In this document: piece by piece, positions 5,600-35,038 of the stretch
How positions within the stretch are numbered: position 1 is the first letter of the stretch
Layout of the letters: every line of letters begins with the position of its first letter
Assembly (NCBI RefSeq): GCF_006345805.1
Contig: NW_021833029.1
Span: 25,535 to 89,534, forward strand
Direction of reading: 5' to 3'
Source of the DNA: Octopus sinensis
Taxonomy: Eukaryota
Length of the DNA stretch: 64,000 nucleotides
The notes under the pieces: model-generated
Seen by the model: only the letters and a program-made list of their open reading frames with translations
What the model was told of the DNA's origin: nothing
Databases searched by the model: none
Program-made: the position numbers and the translations under genes

Positions 5600-6182
5600 C
5601 GTACTTTGGGGTCAGACCCTCTGCGTGAAACCTTTGTCAAGTGTCTTCTATTAGAGCCTTGGACTTTAAGGCGGCGAGCTGGCAGAAACGTCAGCACGCC
5701 GGGAGAAATGCGTAGCCGTATATCGTCTGCCGTTACGTTCTGAGTTCAAATTCAGCCGACGTTGACTTTGCTTTTCGTCCTTTCGGGGTCGATAAATTAA
5801 GTACCAGTTACGCACTGGGATCGATGTAATCGACTTAATCCGTTTGTCTGTCTTTGTTTGTCCTCTCTGTGTTTAGCCCCTTGTGGGTAGTAAAGAAAAA
5901 TATTAGAGCCTTGGACTGGCTAGTGCCTTATGAGGGAATTTCGTAGACAACAACTGTGTAGAAGTTGTCTGTGTGTATGTAGATGTGGATGTCTTTGTGT
6001 TTGTACTCACCACAACCACTTGACAACAGACATTGGTTTGTTAACATTCCCATAACTTAGTGGTTCGACAAAAGAAACCAGCGAGAGTGAAAAGAATAAG
6101 TACTGGGATCTATTTGGTCACCTAAATTCATGAAGGGGAAGCTCCAGCATGGCTGTTGCTCAAATAATGAAACAAGTAAAAG
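5600..6182 (+). mobile_element. Old SINE family 1 copy interrupted by a family 2 insertion
   Basis: Degenerate body (CAAGTGTCTTCTATTAGAGCC...) resumes after the TSD at 5901; tail AGCTCCAGCATGGCTG...GAAACAAGTAAAAG. Confidence 0.7.
5666..5900 (+). mobile_element. tRNA-headed SINE family 2, unit-length monomer with 17-bp TSD
   Basis: TSD TATTAGAGCCTTGGACT at 5649-5665 and 5901-5917; head AAGGCGGCGAGCTGGCAGAAACG, B-box-like GAGTTCAAATTC, tail TGTGTTTAGCCCCTTGTGGGTAGTAAAGAAA. Confidence 0.95.
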
Positions 6183-6262
6183 GAAGATGAAAAGGATCCA
6201 AACTATTTCAAAAGCTTATTGTTCGTACATCTATGGCATTTATAGCTCCTATATCTACACCT

Positions 6263-6525
6263 GTGGTGGCGCATGGCTTAGTGGTTACGGTGTCAGCATC
6301 ATGATCGTAAGATTGTGGTTTCGATTCCTGGACCGGGCGATGCGTTGTGTTCTTGAGCAAAACACTTCATTTCACGTTGCTCCATTCCACTCAGCTGGCA
6401 CAAATGAGTAACGCTGCGATGGACTGGCGTCCCGTCCAGCTAGGGAACACATATGCCATAGAAACCGGGAAACCGGGCCCATGAGCCTGGCTAGGCTTTA
6501 AAAGGGCGCATTTACTATTTTATTT
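6263..6525 (+). mobile_element. tRNA-headed SINE family 3, full length
   Basis: A box TGGCTTAGTGG, B box GTTTCGATTCC, body GTGTTCTTGAGCAAAACACTT and GCGATGGACTGGCGTCCCGTCCAG; near-perfect 12-bp TSD ATATCTACACCT (6251-6262) / ATATTTACACCT (6526-6537). Confidence 0.9.
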
Positions 6526-7191
6526 ATATTTACACCTACTTAAACGCTTACATTTCCTACATATACACCGATTTGTATGCTGATTTAATACCTTTGTGCA
6601 ATACTCAACATGTACAATGTTCAACATATACACTAACCGATGCTTCTACATCAGATAAAGTCATTACAGACAAAAATCTACATCAAAAGATGTCATAGGT
6701 TGTGAGAACCCCGAAACTATAAATAGAGAAACAGAGCTTATGATCTGCAAGTGTTCTGCTCTGGTCATCTGCAACCGTGGCTTTAGTGAAGAGAGGAAAA
6801 GAAGCACATGCTTTGTGTCCAATGAATTAATAAAGTTCTCACTTCTCGATAATGTGTCAACGGTTACCTAGAATAACAAGAAATCATGACTCTAAAAAAC
6901 ATCAAACAGCTGAATTTGGTACTCCAATTCGGGTCTCTCCGTTCCTGAGTATGTCGATGAACATGGAGACGCTCACAATATTTAGGTTGTCATCATGGAT
7001 AGCTAGGATGATTTCTTTCGGCTGAACATTGCACAAAGGTTTTAAAACAGCATATAAGTCAGATCGTAATGTTTTGTTTGCGTGCAAGAACTGTTTTTAA
7101 TGACATTGGACGACAACTCGGTAGACAAGCGAAATTTCTCTCAAATCACCAACAACACAACAATCTAAGTGAAGAACCATTCAAGTATATA

Positions 7192-7646
7192 TAGGTCGTC
7201 GACAACTTACGACCTATCCGACATACGACCGATCAACTTTATGACGATTGGCGCGCCAGCTCGCGGCAGCAATAATAAATAGTCCAGTTGGAATCTAATG
7301 GGTTTAATTTCTTAGAAATTAACCCGTCTACGGATGATGTCAGCTAACAAACGCATCCCCTGGGTTTGGTTATTGATCACCACTGTGATTATCCCAAATG
7401 TTGGATGAATATTTTGTCGCGGAGACATCGAGGCAACCTTGTATTTGTTTATAAGATAACTACTTGGGACTCCGAATTTTTTGACTAACGCCAGTATAAT
7501 AGTATAATACAAAATGCTGTGTGTGACTTTTACCCGAGAATACAACTTAAGAATGTGAAAATATAAAACAAAGCTGTGTAGGCTTATAGGCCGACTTACG
7601 ACCAATTAGTTGGAACCAATTGTGGTCGTAAGTCGACGATTACCTG
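7192..7646. mobile_element. pogo/Tigger-type MITE
   Basis: Imperfect ~25-bp TIRs (TAGGTCGTCGACAACTTACGACC / GGTCGTAAGTCGACGATTACCTG), TA on both sides, subterminal CGACTTACGACC-like repeats. Confidence 0.75.
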
Positions 7647-31689: not shown

Positions 31690-32049
31690 GATAGATAGAT
31701 AGATAGATAGATAGATAGATAGATAGATAGATAGATAGATAGATAGATAGATAGATAGATAGATAGATAGATAGATAGATAGACATATAGATAGATAGAT
31801 AGATAGATAGATAGATAGATAGATAGATATAGATAGATAGATAGATAGATAGATAGATGATAGATAGATAGATAGATAGATAGATAGATAGATAGATAGA
31901 TAGATAGAACAGATAGATAGATAGATAGATAGATAGATAGATAGATAGATAGATAGATAGATGATAGATAGATAGATAGATAATAGATAGATAGATAGAT
32001 AGATAGATAGATAGATAGATAGATAGATAGATAGATAGATAGATAGATA
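31690..32049. repeat. (GATA)n array at 3' end of Tx1 element B
   Basis: Direct observation. Confidence 0.95.
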
Positions 32050-34341
32050 AGTTTCTTTATTGGGCACACAGGGCTGCACACAGATGGGACAAGTTACAAG
32101 GTAGAGCTTTTCTTTCGGGGGATGAAAAAAAAGGGGCTGGCGTAGGTTTTCGATCAAGAGGGATCGTAAAAGGGAAGAAAAGAACAAAAAAAAATAAAAC
32201 AAAAAAAAATAGAATAAAAAATAAAAAGAATAAAAGAAAAAAAAAAGAAAGGGAAAGGAACAAAAGAAGAGAGAAATGAAAAAAGAAGAAAAAGGGGAAA
32301 AAAAGGGGAAGAGGAAAAAAAAAAAGGAACGATCAATAGGGATCGTGTATCACAGGTTATGATATATGTGTGTAAAGGGGAAAGCAAGTAAGGTTTATCC
32401 GTGGGAAGAAAAGCCTACGAAAAAGACCACGGTAACCTTGGTCAATATTGTTATATGTTACCATATTTGTTTGCAAGTGGGTAACCCGCTGTTTTCAATT
32501 TCTGGGTTCATAGGACTATACTCAAGGTGGCTTCGTCATTCATACTTGCCATCCTTGCTACATTCACCCATCTTTTTTTAAAACATTCGCTAGACAAAAC
32601 TTGCCTCTCTACTCTCACTTTCCTTTTCAAGTGGTACTTGTAGAAGTTGATGAGAGATTGACCAGAGAGGAAAGTGTTTGTCTCCAATCCTTTCAAACGC
32701 GTCCACCAGATACATTCTTTCGCCATAGCCACAAGGATGATGAAAATAGCTCTTCCTTCTCGTTTGAAGGAAGGAGGCGTGACAATATTGACGATAGACT
32801 CAGCTGATAAACCGACTCGTCCCACACGTGACAGCAGTTGTTCGACACAAGCCCACAGGTCGGAAATTGTTGGACACTGCACGAGTGCGTGCAGAACGGT
32901 TTCGTCGCTCTGACCGCATCTCGGGCAGGTCGGCCCCGTGTTTCTCGAGCCGTGTCTGTAGAGCTTATCCCGAACGGGTAGCGCTTCTCGGTAATACTGC
33001 CAGGCCAGGGATCTCTGGAAGTTGTCCATGGGCCCTGGCCCGAAAGTCGTCCTGAACAGGCGGGTCAGGTATTCCTTGTCGACGTCCAGGTTCGCCCCGA
33101 GCTCGTCGTCGTACCTCCCCTCCACTAATCCCCTATAGAATGCTTTGGTTGTGTTGAAGTCACTCAAGGTCGACCCAGGACGGCACAGTTGCTTGAGAGC
33201 AACGCGACACTCGCGGTGCCATTCGCCCTTCCCCGGCCTCTTTTTGATCCACGACTGCAGTTCGGTCATGGAGACAAGCTGCGGGAAAGCGTGCCTCACA
33301 AACGGCGACCACACCTGTTCACCGTCGTACATAGAGCCAGAGATGTCGCAGTCTCAGCGCGTGTCTGCGCATCATCAACCACGGCATGCCCAGCCCTCCT
33401 TTTAACGGGTGTTGACAGCAAATGGATCGCCTGACCATCGGAACGCATCCTTTCCACAAGAAGCGAAAGAGAATGCGTTGTTGTAGTTGGTGATGGTAGG
33501 GTCGGGACAAGGTACGACGGTCAGGCGGTAGTAGATGACGGACACGATGTACGTGTTCGCCACCTCCGCCCGACCTTTTAGGGACAGTTTCCTCTCGGCC
33601 CATTGCCGGCGAGAGTGACCACCCTACTCGTTATCTCGTTCCAGTTCTTCTTCCACTTGGAGGTCCGGACCAAACCAGACCCCGAGCAACTCAACCGGGC
33701 CGTCGGTCCAGCGTCCCACGACGGAGGAGCTGGTGGACGGCATGGGCTTGCTTCGCCAGGTGCCTAGTCGCAAGCCCACTGACTTTTCCCGGTTGATTTT
33801 CGCTCCTGTCACCGCTTCGTAGTTTTTCAGTGTCTCGCCGACCTGCTCGATGTGCTCGTGGCTAGACACTATGACGGTGACGTCGTCCGCGTATGCAGAC
33901 ACGCTCGTCCCGCATCCCAATTCTCGCGGGATGCCCCTCAAAGTTGCCAGCTTCCGCAATAATGGCTCGAGAGTCAATACGTATAGAAGCGACGAGAGGG
34001 GGCATCCCTGACGGACCGAACGTGCGATGTCGAAGGGTTTCGATAGATGTCCATTCACGCGAATTACGAACGGATGCTCTGTACAAAGCGGCTATCCAGC
34101 CGCGGAAGACGGGACCGAAGCCAGCCGCTCTGAGGACCGCCTCCAAGTATCGATGTTCTACCCTATCGAAAGCTTTCGATTGATCCAAATTGATCAGCGC
34201 CCCACCCATGCCAGGTTTGTTAACTACCCTGTCTATGATGTAGCGCATCAGGTGGAGGTTGTCATGGATGGTCCGGCCTGGCACGGCGCATGTTTGCGCC
34301 TTGTCGACCAGTTTCTCGATGACAAGCGCCAACCTCTTGGC
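32050..34341 (-). mobile_element. Tx1/L1-clade LINE B, 5'-truncated (RT C-terminal half, CCHC motif, 3' UTR)
   Basis: [43 protein letters not shown]; stop at 32508-32510; AATAAA then (TATC)n; several frameshifts and deletions. Confidence 0.95.
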
Positions 34342-34746
34342 TAGATAGATAGATAGATAAATAGATAGATAGGCAGCCAGAAAGTTAGGTAGATAGATAG
34401 ACAGACAGACAGACAGACAGGCAGACAAGTAGATAGATAGATAGATAGATAGATAGATAGATAGATAGATAGATAGATAGATAGATAGTTAGATAGATAG
34501 ATAGACAGACAGACAGACAGACAAGCAGGCAGGCAGATGATAGATAGATAGATAGATAGATAGATAGATAGATAGATAGATAGATAGACAGACACACAGA
34601 CAGACAAGTAGATAGATAGATAGATAGATAGATAGATAGATAGATAGATAGATAGATGGATAGATGGATAGATAGATAGATAGATAGATAGATAGATAGA
34701 TAGATAGATAGATAGATAGATAGATTGATAGATAGATAGATAGATA
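34342..34746. repeat. (GATA/GACA)n array between Tx1 elements B and A
   Basis: Direct observation. Confidence 0.95.
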
Positions 34747-35038
34747 ACTTTTTTTATTGTAGCCACAGGGCTAAACACAATAAAAATGGACGAAATACAA
34801 TGTAGAATTTTTTCTTTTCGAGGTAGGATGGGTGGGGCACAAAAAAAAAACTCGTTTGATCAATAGGGATCTGTGGGTTGTGTGGTGTATAAAAAAGCAA
34901 TATATATATATATATATATATAAGGTTCACAGTTTAGGTGTAGCTTTGGAAAGAAAAACCTACAAAAAAGACCAAGGCCACTTCAGTTCGAAAATGAACA
35001 CATGAGTAAGTCGCCTTACTTCTCGTTGTCTCTTTTGG

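Follow-up and report, generated by a model that had tools for sequence, protein, structure and literature searches.

A SINE and an L1/Tx1-like LINE of Octopus sinensis share a 3' tail with a terminal hairpin

The window analysed here, 64,000 nucleotides of the Octopus sinensis contig NW_021833029.1, harbours two related LINEs on its minus strand. LINE A (34747..40599), delimited by Pfam hits, ORF layout and junctions, is a near full-length L1/Tx1-like element with an ORF1 region and Exo_endo_phos (APE), RVT_1 and zf-RVT domains, the ORFs being frameshifted. LINE B (32050..34341) is a 5'-truncated relative that retains the C-terminal part of the RT, zf-RVT and the 3' UTR and is 82.7% identical to LINE A over 1.8 kb. 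The LINE copies of the window are defective, and no intact LINE is present in it. The two elements share an orientation and a (TATC)n tract, which according to TRF and junction reads lies 3' of LINE B (31689..32049), between LINE A and LINE B (34342-34746) and 5' of LINE A (40600-40753), so that LINE A has (TATC)n at both flanks. The SINE copies do not share this location. A short element near position 24050, also on the minus strand, ends in (TTA)n (23963-24040).

Family-2 SINEs occur in several arrangements in the window. A monomeric copy on the plus strand (5666..5900; blastn self-hit) has a tail (5857-5901; covariance model R1, 57.7 bits) that forms the actual 3' terminus of the insertion; it is flanked by the perfect 17-bp TSD noted in the initial annotation, TATTAGAGCCTTGGACT, at 5649..5665 and 5901..5917. 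At 8158..8573, two plus-strand units, one full length (8158-8389) and one 5'-truncated (8393-8573), lie head to tail, each with a tail (8348-8392 and 8532-8576; model R1), and are followed by a unit carrying the other tail, from 8576 to about 8790. The same internal junction, AAAGAAATAG joined to GTATTTCG, recurs in a second plus-strand dimer at 12853..13244 (units 12853-13066 and 13079-13244; tails 13025-13069 and 13203-13247, model R1), immediately 5' of which lies (ATT)n. On the minus strand, a full-length copy (25871..26102; tail 25868-25912, model R1) is followed on its 3' side by a 5'-truncated unit with a family-1 tail, from 25868 down to about 25650. Of the six family-2 tails in the window, four lie inside dimers or trimers whose junctions recur, and only SINE 5666-5900 and unit 13079-13244 have the tail at the 3' end of the insertion. 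A second SINE family of the window shares its head and body with family 2 and has an unrelated tail; this combination of one head and body with two different tails indicates that the tail can be exchanged as a module. A B-box-like motif, GAGTTCAAATTC, is invariant across the SINE copies, and no tRNA was detected with ARAGORN or Rfam.

The tails of the SINE and of the LINEs are homologous, and the match is located at the termini of both. Without gaps, the SINE tails at 13204-13244 and 25871-25911 (minus strand) are identical to the end of LINE B (32052-32092, minus strand) at 31 of 41 positions, exactly the figure of the initial annotation, whose coordinates and counts all hold; the tail at 5861-5897 matches the LINE B 3' end at 27 of 37. 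When the 41-mer was placed ungapped on both strands of the whole window (128,000 placements), only the six SINE tails (34-41 identities) and the LINE B terminus (31) scored above 24, with no further site. The 12-mer TGTGTTTAGCCC has three exact copies in the window, namely in the SINE tails at 5868 and 8359 and in the 3' end of LINE A at 34768 (minus strand). In a gapped Smith-Waterman scan of the window with a 62-nt SINE-tail consensus as the query, the top non-SINE site is the LINE B 3' end (score 45; 99.9th percentile 32), followed by the 24050 element (36), while the 3' end of LINE A reaches 30. Across the window, a covariance model detects the tail motif solely in the six SINE tails, LINE A (34748..34790, minus strand; model R1, 26.5 bits), LINE B (32049..32093, minus strand; 42.5 bits), which is the best non-SINE match, and the 24050 element (24038..24081, minus strand; 40.7 bits).

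Closer relatives of the SINE tail were found when LINE loci of O. sinensis (L008) and Argonauta hians (L007) were searched by blastn with the SINE consensus. The consensus matches L008 (3527-3569) at 88% over 43 nt (E 1.8e-9) and L007 (3650-3691) at 86% over 42 nt, and these closer 3' ends reinforce the initial observation. LINE A and LINE B do share the tail but are not its closest match and would be relatives of the partner; subfamilies of the L008/L007 type are nearer. The blastn matches, which include L002 and L003, fall at LINE termini only, with E-values of 1.8e-9 and 7.5e-8, and an exact 15-mer, GTCCCCTCTATGTTT, is common to the SINE and L007. The termini of L007 and L002 follow ORF2s homologous to that of LINE A (EN, RT and C-terminus, ~42-67% amino acid identity by segment), and the C-terminal regions of the sampled LINE subfamilies have 44-79% protein identity to LINE B. 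Every subfamily sampled ends in the terminal motif. In an alignment of the LINE 3' UTRs, the tail forms a conserved island and the remainder is hard to align; SINE sequence upstream of the terminal ~45-55 nt is absent from all LINEs compared. The 24050 element likewise matches the L008 and L007 tails in its last ~40-50 nt only.

Argonauta has its own version of the tail. Its SINE tails, CGGCCCTTGTGGCTAAT.GAGAAATCTAT, resemble that of the Argonauta LINE L002b, CGGCCCTTGTGGCTAATAAAGAAATCTAT, and this version, including the lineage-specific end GAAATCTAT, is found in Argonauta SINEs and in at least two further short elements of this genus; one tail-bearing short Argonauta element is flanked by a 15-bp TSD. 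Within a 35-column core, tail identities are 82-88%. The tail is conserved across two octopod genera, at the terminus of an ORF2-bearing LINE family. TSD-flanked insertions end in the tail, and several LINE copies are 5'-truncated (LINE B, L008 and L002b), that of L008 being bounded by the 7-bp repeat ATTGGAT on either side; TSDs and 5' truncation fit target-primed reverse transcription (TPRT). L003 and L007, like the 24050 element, end in (ATT)n, and the L008 copy lies outside a microsatellite. The repeats at the LINE ends may be tails made by the RT rather than insertion targets.

A hairpin with a C(T)TGT loop and changed stems had also been described at the end of the tail. It reads as such in the SINE (GCCC-CTTGT-GGGC or GGGT), in LINE A (TAGCC-CTGT-GGCTA, within a longer A/U-rich stem; fold -10.9 kcal/mol, z -3.7) and in the 24050 element (GCC-CTTGT-GGC), but LINE B has lost the stem and has no canonical hairpin. 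RNAalifold predicts the 4-bp hairpin unaided, and in an 11-pair structure 83.5% of the cells pair, versus 43-53% when the partners are slid. One stem pair varies between G-C, C-G and A-U, and the adjacent one between G-U, G-C and A-U, the C-G type being a single event common to the six SINE copies. The covariation is real but thin, amounting to only two or three independent events. The hairpin is also predicted to be thermodynamically weak, with z-scores between -0.3 and -1.4 in the Octopus SINE tails and near 0 in L008, LINE A and one Argonauta SINE (-3.0) being the only ones to stand out.

As to the LINE itself, the best solved (PDB) relative of LINE A is human L1 ORF2p (E 8.6e-42 over EN and RT), with R2 at ~1e-20. 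By its APE, L1-like RT and C-terminal zinc-binding domain, the element resembles L1/Tx1-like LINEs, domains by which Tx1 cannot be told apart from other L1 lineages. The cluster names of 20 relatives of the LINE contained nothing informative on Tx1 membership. Among the recently active LINEs of O. vulgaris, L1-Tx1 is the only L1-named group in the published annotation (PMC13282606). The tail comparison covered LINEs of this family, among the octopus LINE clades that also include RTE, CR1 and Dong-R4.

As the SINE and the L1/Tx1-like LINE end in the same tail with a hairpin, the SINE most likely borrows the reverse transcriptase of the LINE. These data support the core reading of the initial annotation, and we consider it likely that this octopod SINE family acquired its last 45-55 nt, as a module, by copying of the 3' end of a Tx1-like LINE family of the L1 superfamily. 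The putative module, ...TTGTCCCCTCTATGTTTAGCCCCTTGTGGGCAATAAAGAAAT(A), would stem from an autonomous LINE encoding APE, RT and zf-RVT. It comprises a short GC stem of 4 bp, the C(T)TGT loop and a short A-rich end, the GC stem being embedded in a weaker A/U-rich outer stem formed by UCUNUGUU with AAUAAAGA. The ORF2 protein of the LINE would recognise the terminal stem-loop and the A-rich end on its own RNA, i.e. make a 'stringent' choice of template, and SINE RNAs with the same module would be taken in trans as templates and then inserted by TPRT. Both recognition of the tail by the RT and trans mobilisation of the SINE are inferred from the sequences compared here.

Alternatively, the tail could be a relic of the past capture of a LINE 3' end, with the SINE being moved by another LINE (e.g. 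RTE or CR1) or recognition having been relaxed via the A-rich end, in which case the shared tail would tell nothing about the present partner. RTE and CR1 are abundant in octopus. Moreover, the internal position of most family-2 tails in composite arrays of the window, the terminal unit of which can carry the other tail, the weakness of the hairpin and the origin of O. bimaculoides non-reference insertions from RTE and not from L1-Tx1 (PMC9115989) are compatible with a relic. We nevertheless regard it as unlikely, given that Octopus and Argonauta SINEs both keep the tail with lineage-specific changes that match the local LINE, that it occurs at the TSD-flanked 3' ends of several unrelated short elements and that L1-Tx1 families are listed among the recently active ones of O. 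vulgaris (PMC13282606).

The transfer might also have occurred in the reverse direction, or incidentally, if a SINE fragment had inserted at, or recombined onto, LINE 3' ends, so that the tail would be foreign to the LINE rather than its native signal. Insertions adjacent to tails are common here, as are composites, and chimeras therefore do form. However, the presence of the motif at the end of all sampled LINE subfamilies, which differ from LINE B to the extent given above, the absence from LINEs of any SINE sequence beyond the terminal ~45-55 nt and the occurrence of the SINE body with alternative tails indicate a transfer from LINE to SINE and make this scenario very improbable. Finally, a chance or compositional resemblance due to an AATAAA signal and T/G-rich low-complexity sequence, to which the 3' third of the match (AATAAAGAAA) and the similarity of its upstream part (TGTCTGTCCTTGTTTGTCCCCTC) to other window repeats might point, is effectively refuted by the blastn E-values and the unique 31/41 placement, as well as by the exact 15-mer and 12-mer and the position of the matches at exact termini, and its probability is negligible.

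The system resembles UnaL2/UnaSINE1 of eel and other stringent pairs (Ohshima and Okada), which similarly combine a SINE, there of tRNA type, with a LINE that has a conserved 3' tail of ~40-60 nt, a short stem-loop with a conserved loop followed by a short repeat or A-rich end, TSDs and 5' truncation. In those pairs the partners are L2, CR1 or RTE, whereas the putative octopus partner is an L1-superfamily (Tx1-like) LINE with zf-RVT. A table of 58 SINE/LINE pairs contains no mollusc pair and no Tx1 partner (PMC3747384). The premise of mostly poly(A)-relaxed L1-clade partners is valid for mammals, but stringent L1-clade pairs exist in maize and sorghum (LINE1-1_ZM with ZmSINE2/3) and in Chlamydomonas (L1-1_CR with SINEX-3_CR) (Ohshima 2012, PMC3472496), and crocodilian SINEU has been proposed to be moved by Tx1-Mar, LINEs of the Tx1 clade (Kojima 2015, PMC4494074). 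As in octopus, the plant and algal pairs consist of an L1-superfamily LINE and a SINE, there a tRNA SINE, that have a specific 3' end in common, with variable stem bases, conserved loop bases and a tail that stands out as a conserved island of the 3' UTR. In contrast, they end in poly(A) or (T)n and have a UCU loop motif, whereas the elements of this animal, a cephalopod, end in AAAGAAAT with or without (TATC)n, (ATT)n or CTAT and have a C(T)TGT loop. SINEU and Tx1-Mar also form tandem or nested insertions beside relatives, but that case, in which SINEU ends in poly(A), rests on a shared target preference and shared 5' heads, and the octopus case on a shared 3' tail. Alu and L1 are likewise similar in the L1-type ORF2 architecture and in that new copies often land in the A-rich tails of older ones, yielding head-to-tail arrays; however, they form a relaxed, poly(A)-dependent pair, while the octopus pair shares a specific non-poly(A) tail, without long poly(A). 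Octopus SINEs called OK, OR1 and OR2 were reportedly described by Ohshima and Okada in 1994. By description only, these and the 'unclassified SINE' families of O. vulgaris (PMC13282606) are like the present ones in being abundant octopod SINEs with tRNA-type promoter motifs, putative ones in the present case; our literature search found no LINE partner for any of them.

About a tenth of octopus genomes consists of SINEs, which are mostly listed as 'unclassified' and have no known driver (PMC13282606). Recognised by its shared tail, a LINE partner would indicate which reverse transcriptase built this fraction, and it would offer a handle for dating and annotating the elements. Tail sharing between SINEs and LINEs is itself textbook knowledge; it is the LINE group that is unusual here. 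The few L1-superfamily LINEs that apparently select their templates through a specific 3' structure instead of poly(A) now gain an animal example, which bears on the origin of relaxed recognition in mammalian L1. Tentatively, this may be the first animal pair of the stringent type between a tRNA-type SINE and an L1/Tx1-superfamily LINE, with a hairpin tail that has co-evolved since before the Octopus/Argonauta split and been passed among non-autonomous families. If so, its passage among several such families would have driven part of the large octopod-specific SINE expansion, and stringent 3'-end recognition may be ancestral for the whole L1/Tx1 group and not a feature of plant L1s only.

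The ~235-bp SINE occurs nine times in the 64-kb window. Six copies (family 2) carry the tail described for it (5666-5900, 8158-8389, 8393-8573, 12853-13066, 13079-13244 and, on the minus strand, 25871-26102), and three have the same head and body with another tail, ...CCCCGAAATTGCTGACCTTGTGCCAAATTTGAAATCA (8576 to ~8790, 27692-27911 and, on the minus strand, 25868 down to ~25650). As one head and body is found with two different tails, the tail is an exchangeable module. The 17-bp TSD initially annotated at 5649/5901 proved to be a perfect repeat flanking the SINE (5649-5665 and 5901-5917). 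Neither Rfam nor ARAGORN detected a tRNA in the SINE head. A copy of family 1, which shares the body and has a tail ending in ...CTGAAATCATT, is flanked on both sides by an 11-bp TSD, ATTAAGCGTCA (27681-27922). A fragment of the family 1 tail is also present at ~52375-52413, and neither the window nor the fetched loci yielded a LINE partner for this tail.

Most SINE units are ordered head to tail, the next unit beginning 0-12 nt after the preceding tail, and only two of the nine in the window are solo. Such arrays are found in the window (8158-8790, 12853-13244 and 25650-26102, the latter on the minus strand) and in two fetched Argonauta hians loci, L002 (7620-7926, minus strand, and 8780-9311) and L007 (4316-4662). 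Two junctions are identical in separate arrays, namely AAAGAAATAG joined to GTATTTCG (8389/8393 and 13066/13079) and AAATAAG joined to AA(A/C)CGTTAGCAC (8573/8576 and 25871/25868). These recurrent junctions would reflect master elements that are themselves dimers or trimers, or else insertions targeted to existing tails through microhomology (TAG; AGAA).

Aligned without gaps, the SINE tails at 13204-13244 and 25871-25911 agree with the 3'-terminal 41 nt of LINE B at exactly 31 of 41 positions, as in the earlier hand count. Among all ungapped placements on both strands of the window, more than 24 matches were obtained only at SINE tails and the LINE B terminus. The 12-mer TGTGTTTAGCCC, reported as common to the SINE tails and LINE A, indeed has no other exact occurrences in the window than two SINE tails and the LINE A 3' end. 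In a gapped Smith-Waterman scan with a 62-nt tail consensus, LINE B scored 45 (99.9th percentile, 32). The short minus-strand element at 24050 scored 36 and LINE A 30, a ranking that agrees with the ungapped count. Matches at 2201-2340, 3041-3180, 18201-18340 and 60321-60460 were rejected as members of other repeat families, similar to the tail only in its T/G-rich upstream portion and not in the hairpin. A third repeat family (...GCTTGACAACCGATGCTGGTGTGTTTACGTCCCCGTAACTTAGCGGTTCGGCAAAA...) adjoins (GT)n at 18230-18380, 60340-60480 and ~5990-6090, and it begins with TGTCTGTGTTTGTCCCCTC, which is similar to upstream sequence of the family 2 tail. An unclassified repeat of at least ~170 bp has two close copies ~830 bp apart (2230-2400 and 3060-3230).

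LINE A (34747-40599, minus strand) is frameshift-broken and harbours Exo_endo_phos, RVT_1 and zf-RVT domains; LINE B (32050-34341, minus strand) is 5'-truncated and 82.7% identical to it over 1.8 kb. The ORF2 encodes APE endonuclease, RT and zf-RVT domains, and no Pfam domains were found in the ORF1 pieces of LINE A. The best solved relative of ORF2 is human L1 ORF2p, over the EN and RT regions (E 8.6e-42; R2 proteins, ~1e-20), which places the LINE in the L1 superfamily. Among recently active O. vulgaris LINEs, L1-Tx1 is the sole L1-named group in the published annotation (PMC13282606), and Tx1 is typified by site-restricted insertion (PMC4494074). We infer that the LINE belongs to the Tx1 clade. 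The window is of cephalopod origin, and its LINE proteins have their closest relatives in Argonauta hians, Octopus sinensis and O. bimaculoides; an all-library HMMER search followed by two cluster look-ups of 20 relatives gave no names more informative than 'hypothetical' and 'reverse transcriptase domain'. One close relative of the C-terminus (P0124) bears the name 'MAG: zinc-binding domain-containing protein [Herbaspirillum sp.]' and almost certainly represents DNA of a cephalopod host that contaminated a bacterial bin. An ORF2 relative of the limpet Patella caerulea (P0203; 35% amino acid identity) belongs to a cluster of at least 11 gene models (13 protein accessions) on one chromosome-scale contig, with locus tags SNE40_003393-003415, odd numbers only. 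This pattern points to LINE copies arranged in tandem, as is seen for site-specific elements. Another LINE fragment in the window (42759-43908, minus strand; RVT_1, E 1.2e-16) has 27% amino acid identity to LINE A, and no sequence resembling either SINE tail was found near it.

Contigs encoding relatives of the LINE C-terminus were fetched and read beyond the stop codons. Three of them (L001, L004 and L005) stop short of the LINE terminus and give no 3' end. The others end in ATTGTCCCCCTCTATGTTTGGGCCCTTGTGGCTAATAAAGAAAT (L008, an O. sinensis chromosome), ATCGTCCCCTCTATGTTTTTGCCCTTGTGGCTAATAAAAGAAATA(ATT)n (L007, A. hians), ...GGGCCCTTGTGGCCAATAAAAGAAATC(ATT)n (L003, a metagenome contig) and ...TTTAACCCTTGTGGTTTGAATAAA (L009, a Logan read assembly), and L002 has two LINE 3' ends, one of which is CTGTGTCGGCCCTTGTGGCTAATAAAGAAATCTAT. 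In blastn searches of these loci, the SINE consensus matched precisely at the LINE termini, with 88% identity over 43 nt in L008 (E 1.8e-9) and 86% over 42 nt in L007 (E 7.5e-8). Subfamilies of the L008/L007 type are nearer to the SINE tail than LINE A and LINE B. By tblastn, homologues of the LINE A EN, RT and C-terminus were detected directly upstream of the L007 and L002 ends. LINE A and LINE B are therefore related to the partner. Across the LINE subfamilies most of the 3' UTR aligns poorly, and conservation is confined to an island made up of the last 35-55 nt. Scans of the metagenome collection with a protein pattern combined with a C-terminal alignment and with the DNA pattern CCCTTGTGGNNAATAAAN{0,1}GAAAT gave no matches, nor did a viral-contig scan. 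The (TTA)n end of the 24050 element prompted us to consider it as Dong/R4; this was rejected because L003 and L007 have the same tail and (ATT)n directly behind an APE/RT/zf-RVT ORF2. In L002, a near full-length Argonauta copy is followed after ~130 nt by a 3'-UTR-only LINE copy of ~235 nt (6418-6656), an extreme 5' truncation, again beside a relative's tail.

The Argonauta loci also contain homologues of the window SINE, with ~71% identity over body and tail. Their tails read ...CTGTGTTCGGCCCTTGTGGCTAATAGAGAAATCTAT, and the L002 LINE tail shares with them both the stem version and the CTAT at the end. A covariance model trained on the tails retrieved only the nine known sites in the window, and three further Argonauta instances outside the training set: a SINE with a different body, an element of ~143 bp with a 15-bp TSD on its flanks and one further variant. 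LINE-type tails at the TSD-flanked 3' ends of unrelated non-autonomous elements would be expected if the tail is a reverse-transcription signal.

RNAalifold predicted a single helix for 20 tails, a 4-bp stem with a C(T)TGT loop. MAFFT misregistered LINE A, whose loop has 4 nt, and one placeholder N was added in its loop (alignment A4), N cells being excluded from pair counting. In an 11-pair structure combining the inner GC stem with an outer A/U-rich stem (UCUNUGUU with AAUAAAGA), 83.5% of cells are paired, vs 43-53% with partners slid by 1-3 columns. From the loop outwards, the inner pairs are C-G in 20/20 tails; C-G in 15 and U-G in 2; G-C in 11 (most LINEs and the Argonauta elements), C-G in 6 (all Octopus SINE copies) and A-U in 1 (L009); and G-U in 9, G-C in 5 and A-U in 2. 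At the third pair, the six C-G copies go back to a single event. Folding z-scores are unremarkable save for LINE A (-3.7) and one Argonauta SINE (-3.0). The hairpins read as in the initial annotation, but LINE B has not retained the canonical stem, and the evidence from pairing, in so short a stem, is real but thin.

LINE A and LINE B lie in the same orientation in one (TATC)n tract (40600-40753, 34342-34746 and 31689-32049), which is present on both sides of LINE A. L003, L007 and the 24050 element (repeat at 23963-24040) end in (ATT)n, and the Argonauta elements have a single terminal ATCTAT. The sequence around the L008 copy is ordinary, and each of its junctions carries the 7-bp repeat ATTGGAT. 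The (TATC)n and (ATT)n repeats would result either from microsatellite-specific insertion or from terminal repeats made by the RT. Microsatellite-specific insertion is known for Kibi and Koshi of the Tx1 clade.

Taken together, the tails most probably reflect stringent recognition by ORF2. The LINE protein would recognize the terminal stem-loop and the A-rich end, and SINE RNAs with the copied tail would be taken in trans and inserted by TPRT. A weakness of this explanation is that, of the six family 2 tails in the window, four lie inside composite arrays. That the tail is a relic and a different LINE does the work is unlikely; the comparison covered the LINE 3' ends of the window and fetched loci, with RTE, CR1 and Dong-R4 ends outside it. 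It is very improbable that the LINE ends are chimeras derived from the SINE, because the tail is present in all LINE subfamilies and SINE sequence beyond the shared terminal region in none. Resemblance by chance or composition is ruled out for practical purposes by the blastn matches to LINE termini and the ungapped window count.

Tail sharing between SINEs and LINEs is classical. In a 2013 table of 58 SINE/LINE pairs, CR1- and RTE-clade partners predominate and L2 is also frequent (PMC3747384), and L1-clade pairs are those of maize/sorghum and Chlamydomonas only (PMC3747384; PMC3472496). We found no description of an octopus SINE/LINE partner in the literature searched, Repbase reports being outside the search. 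Kojima (2015) proposed that Tx1-Mar moves the crocodilian SINEU, from shared targets and heads (PMC4494074); those elements have poly(A) ends, whereas the octopod elements share a 3' tail. The stringent pairs of the 58-pair table include no mollusc and no Tx1 partner (PMC3747384), in contrast with the octopod SINE and Tx1-like LINE described here. That this octopod pair joins the known tail-sharing class is well supported.
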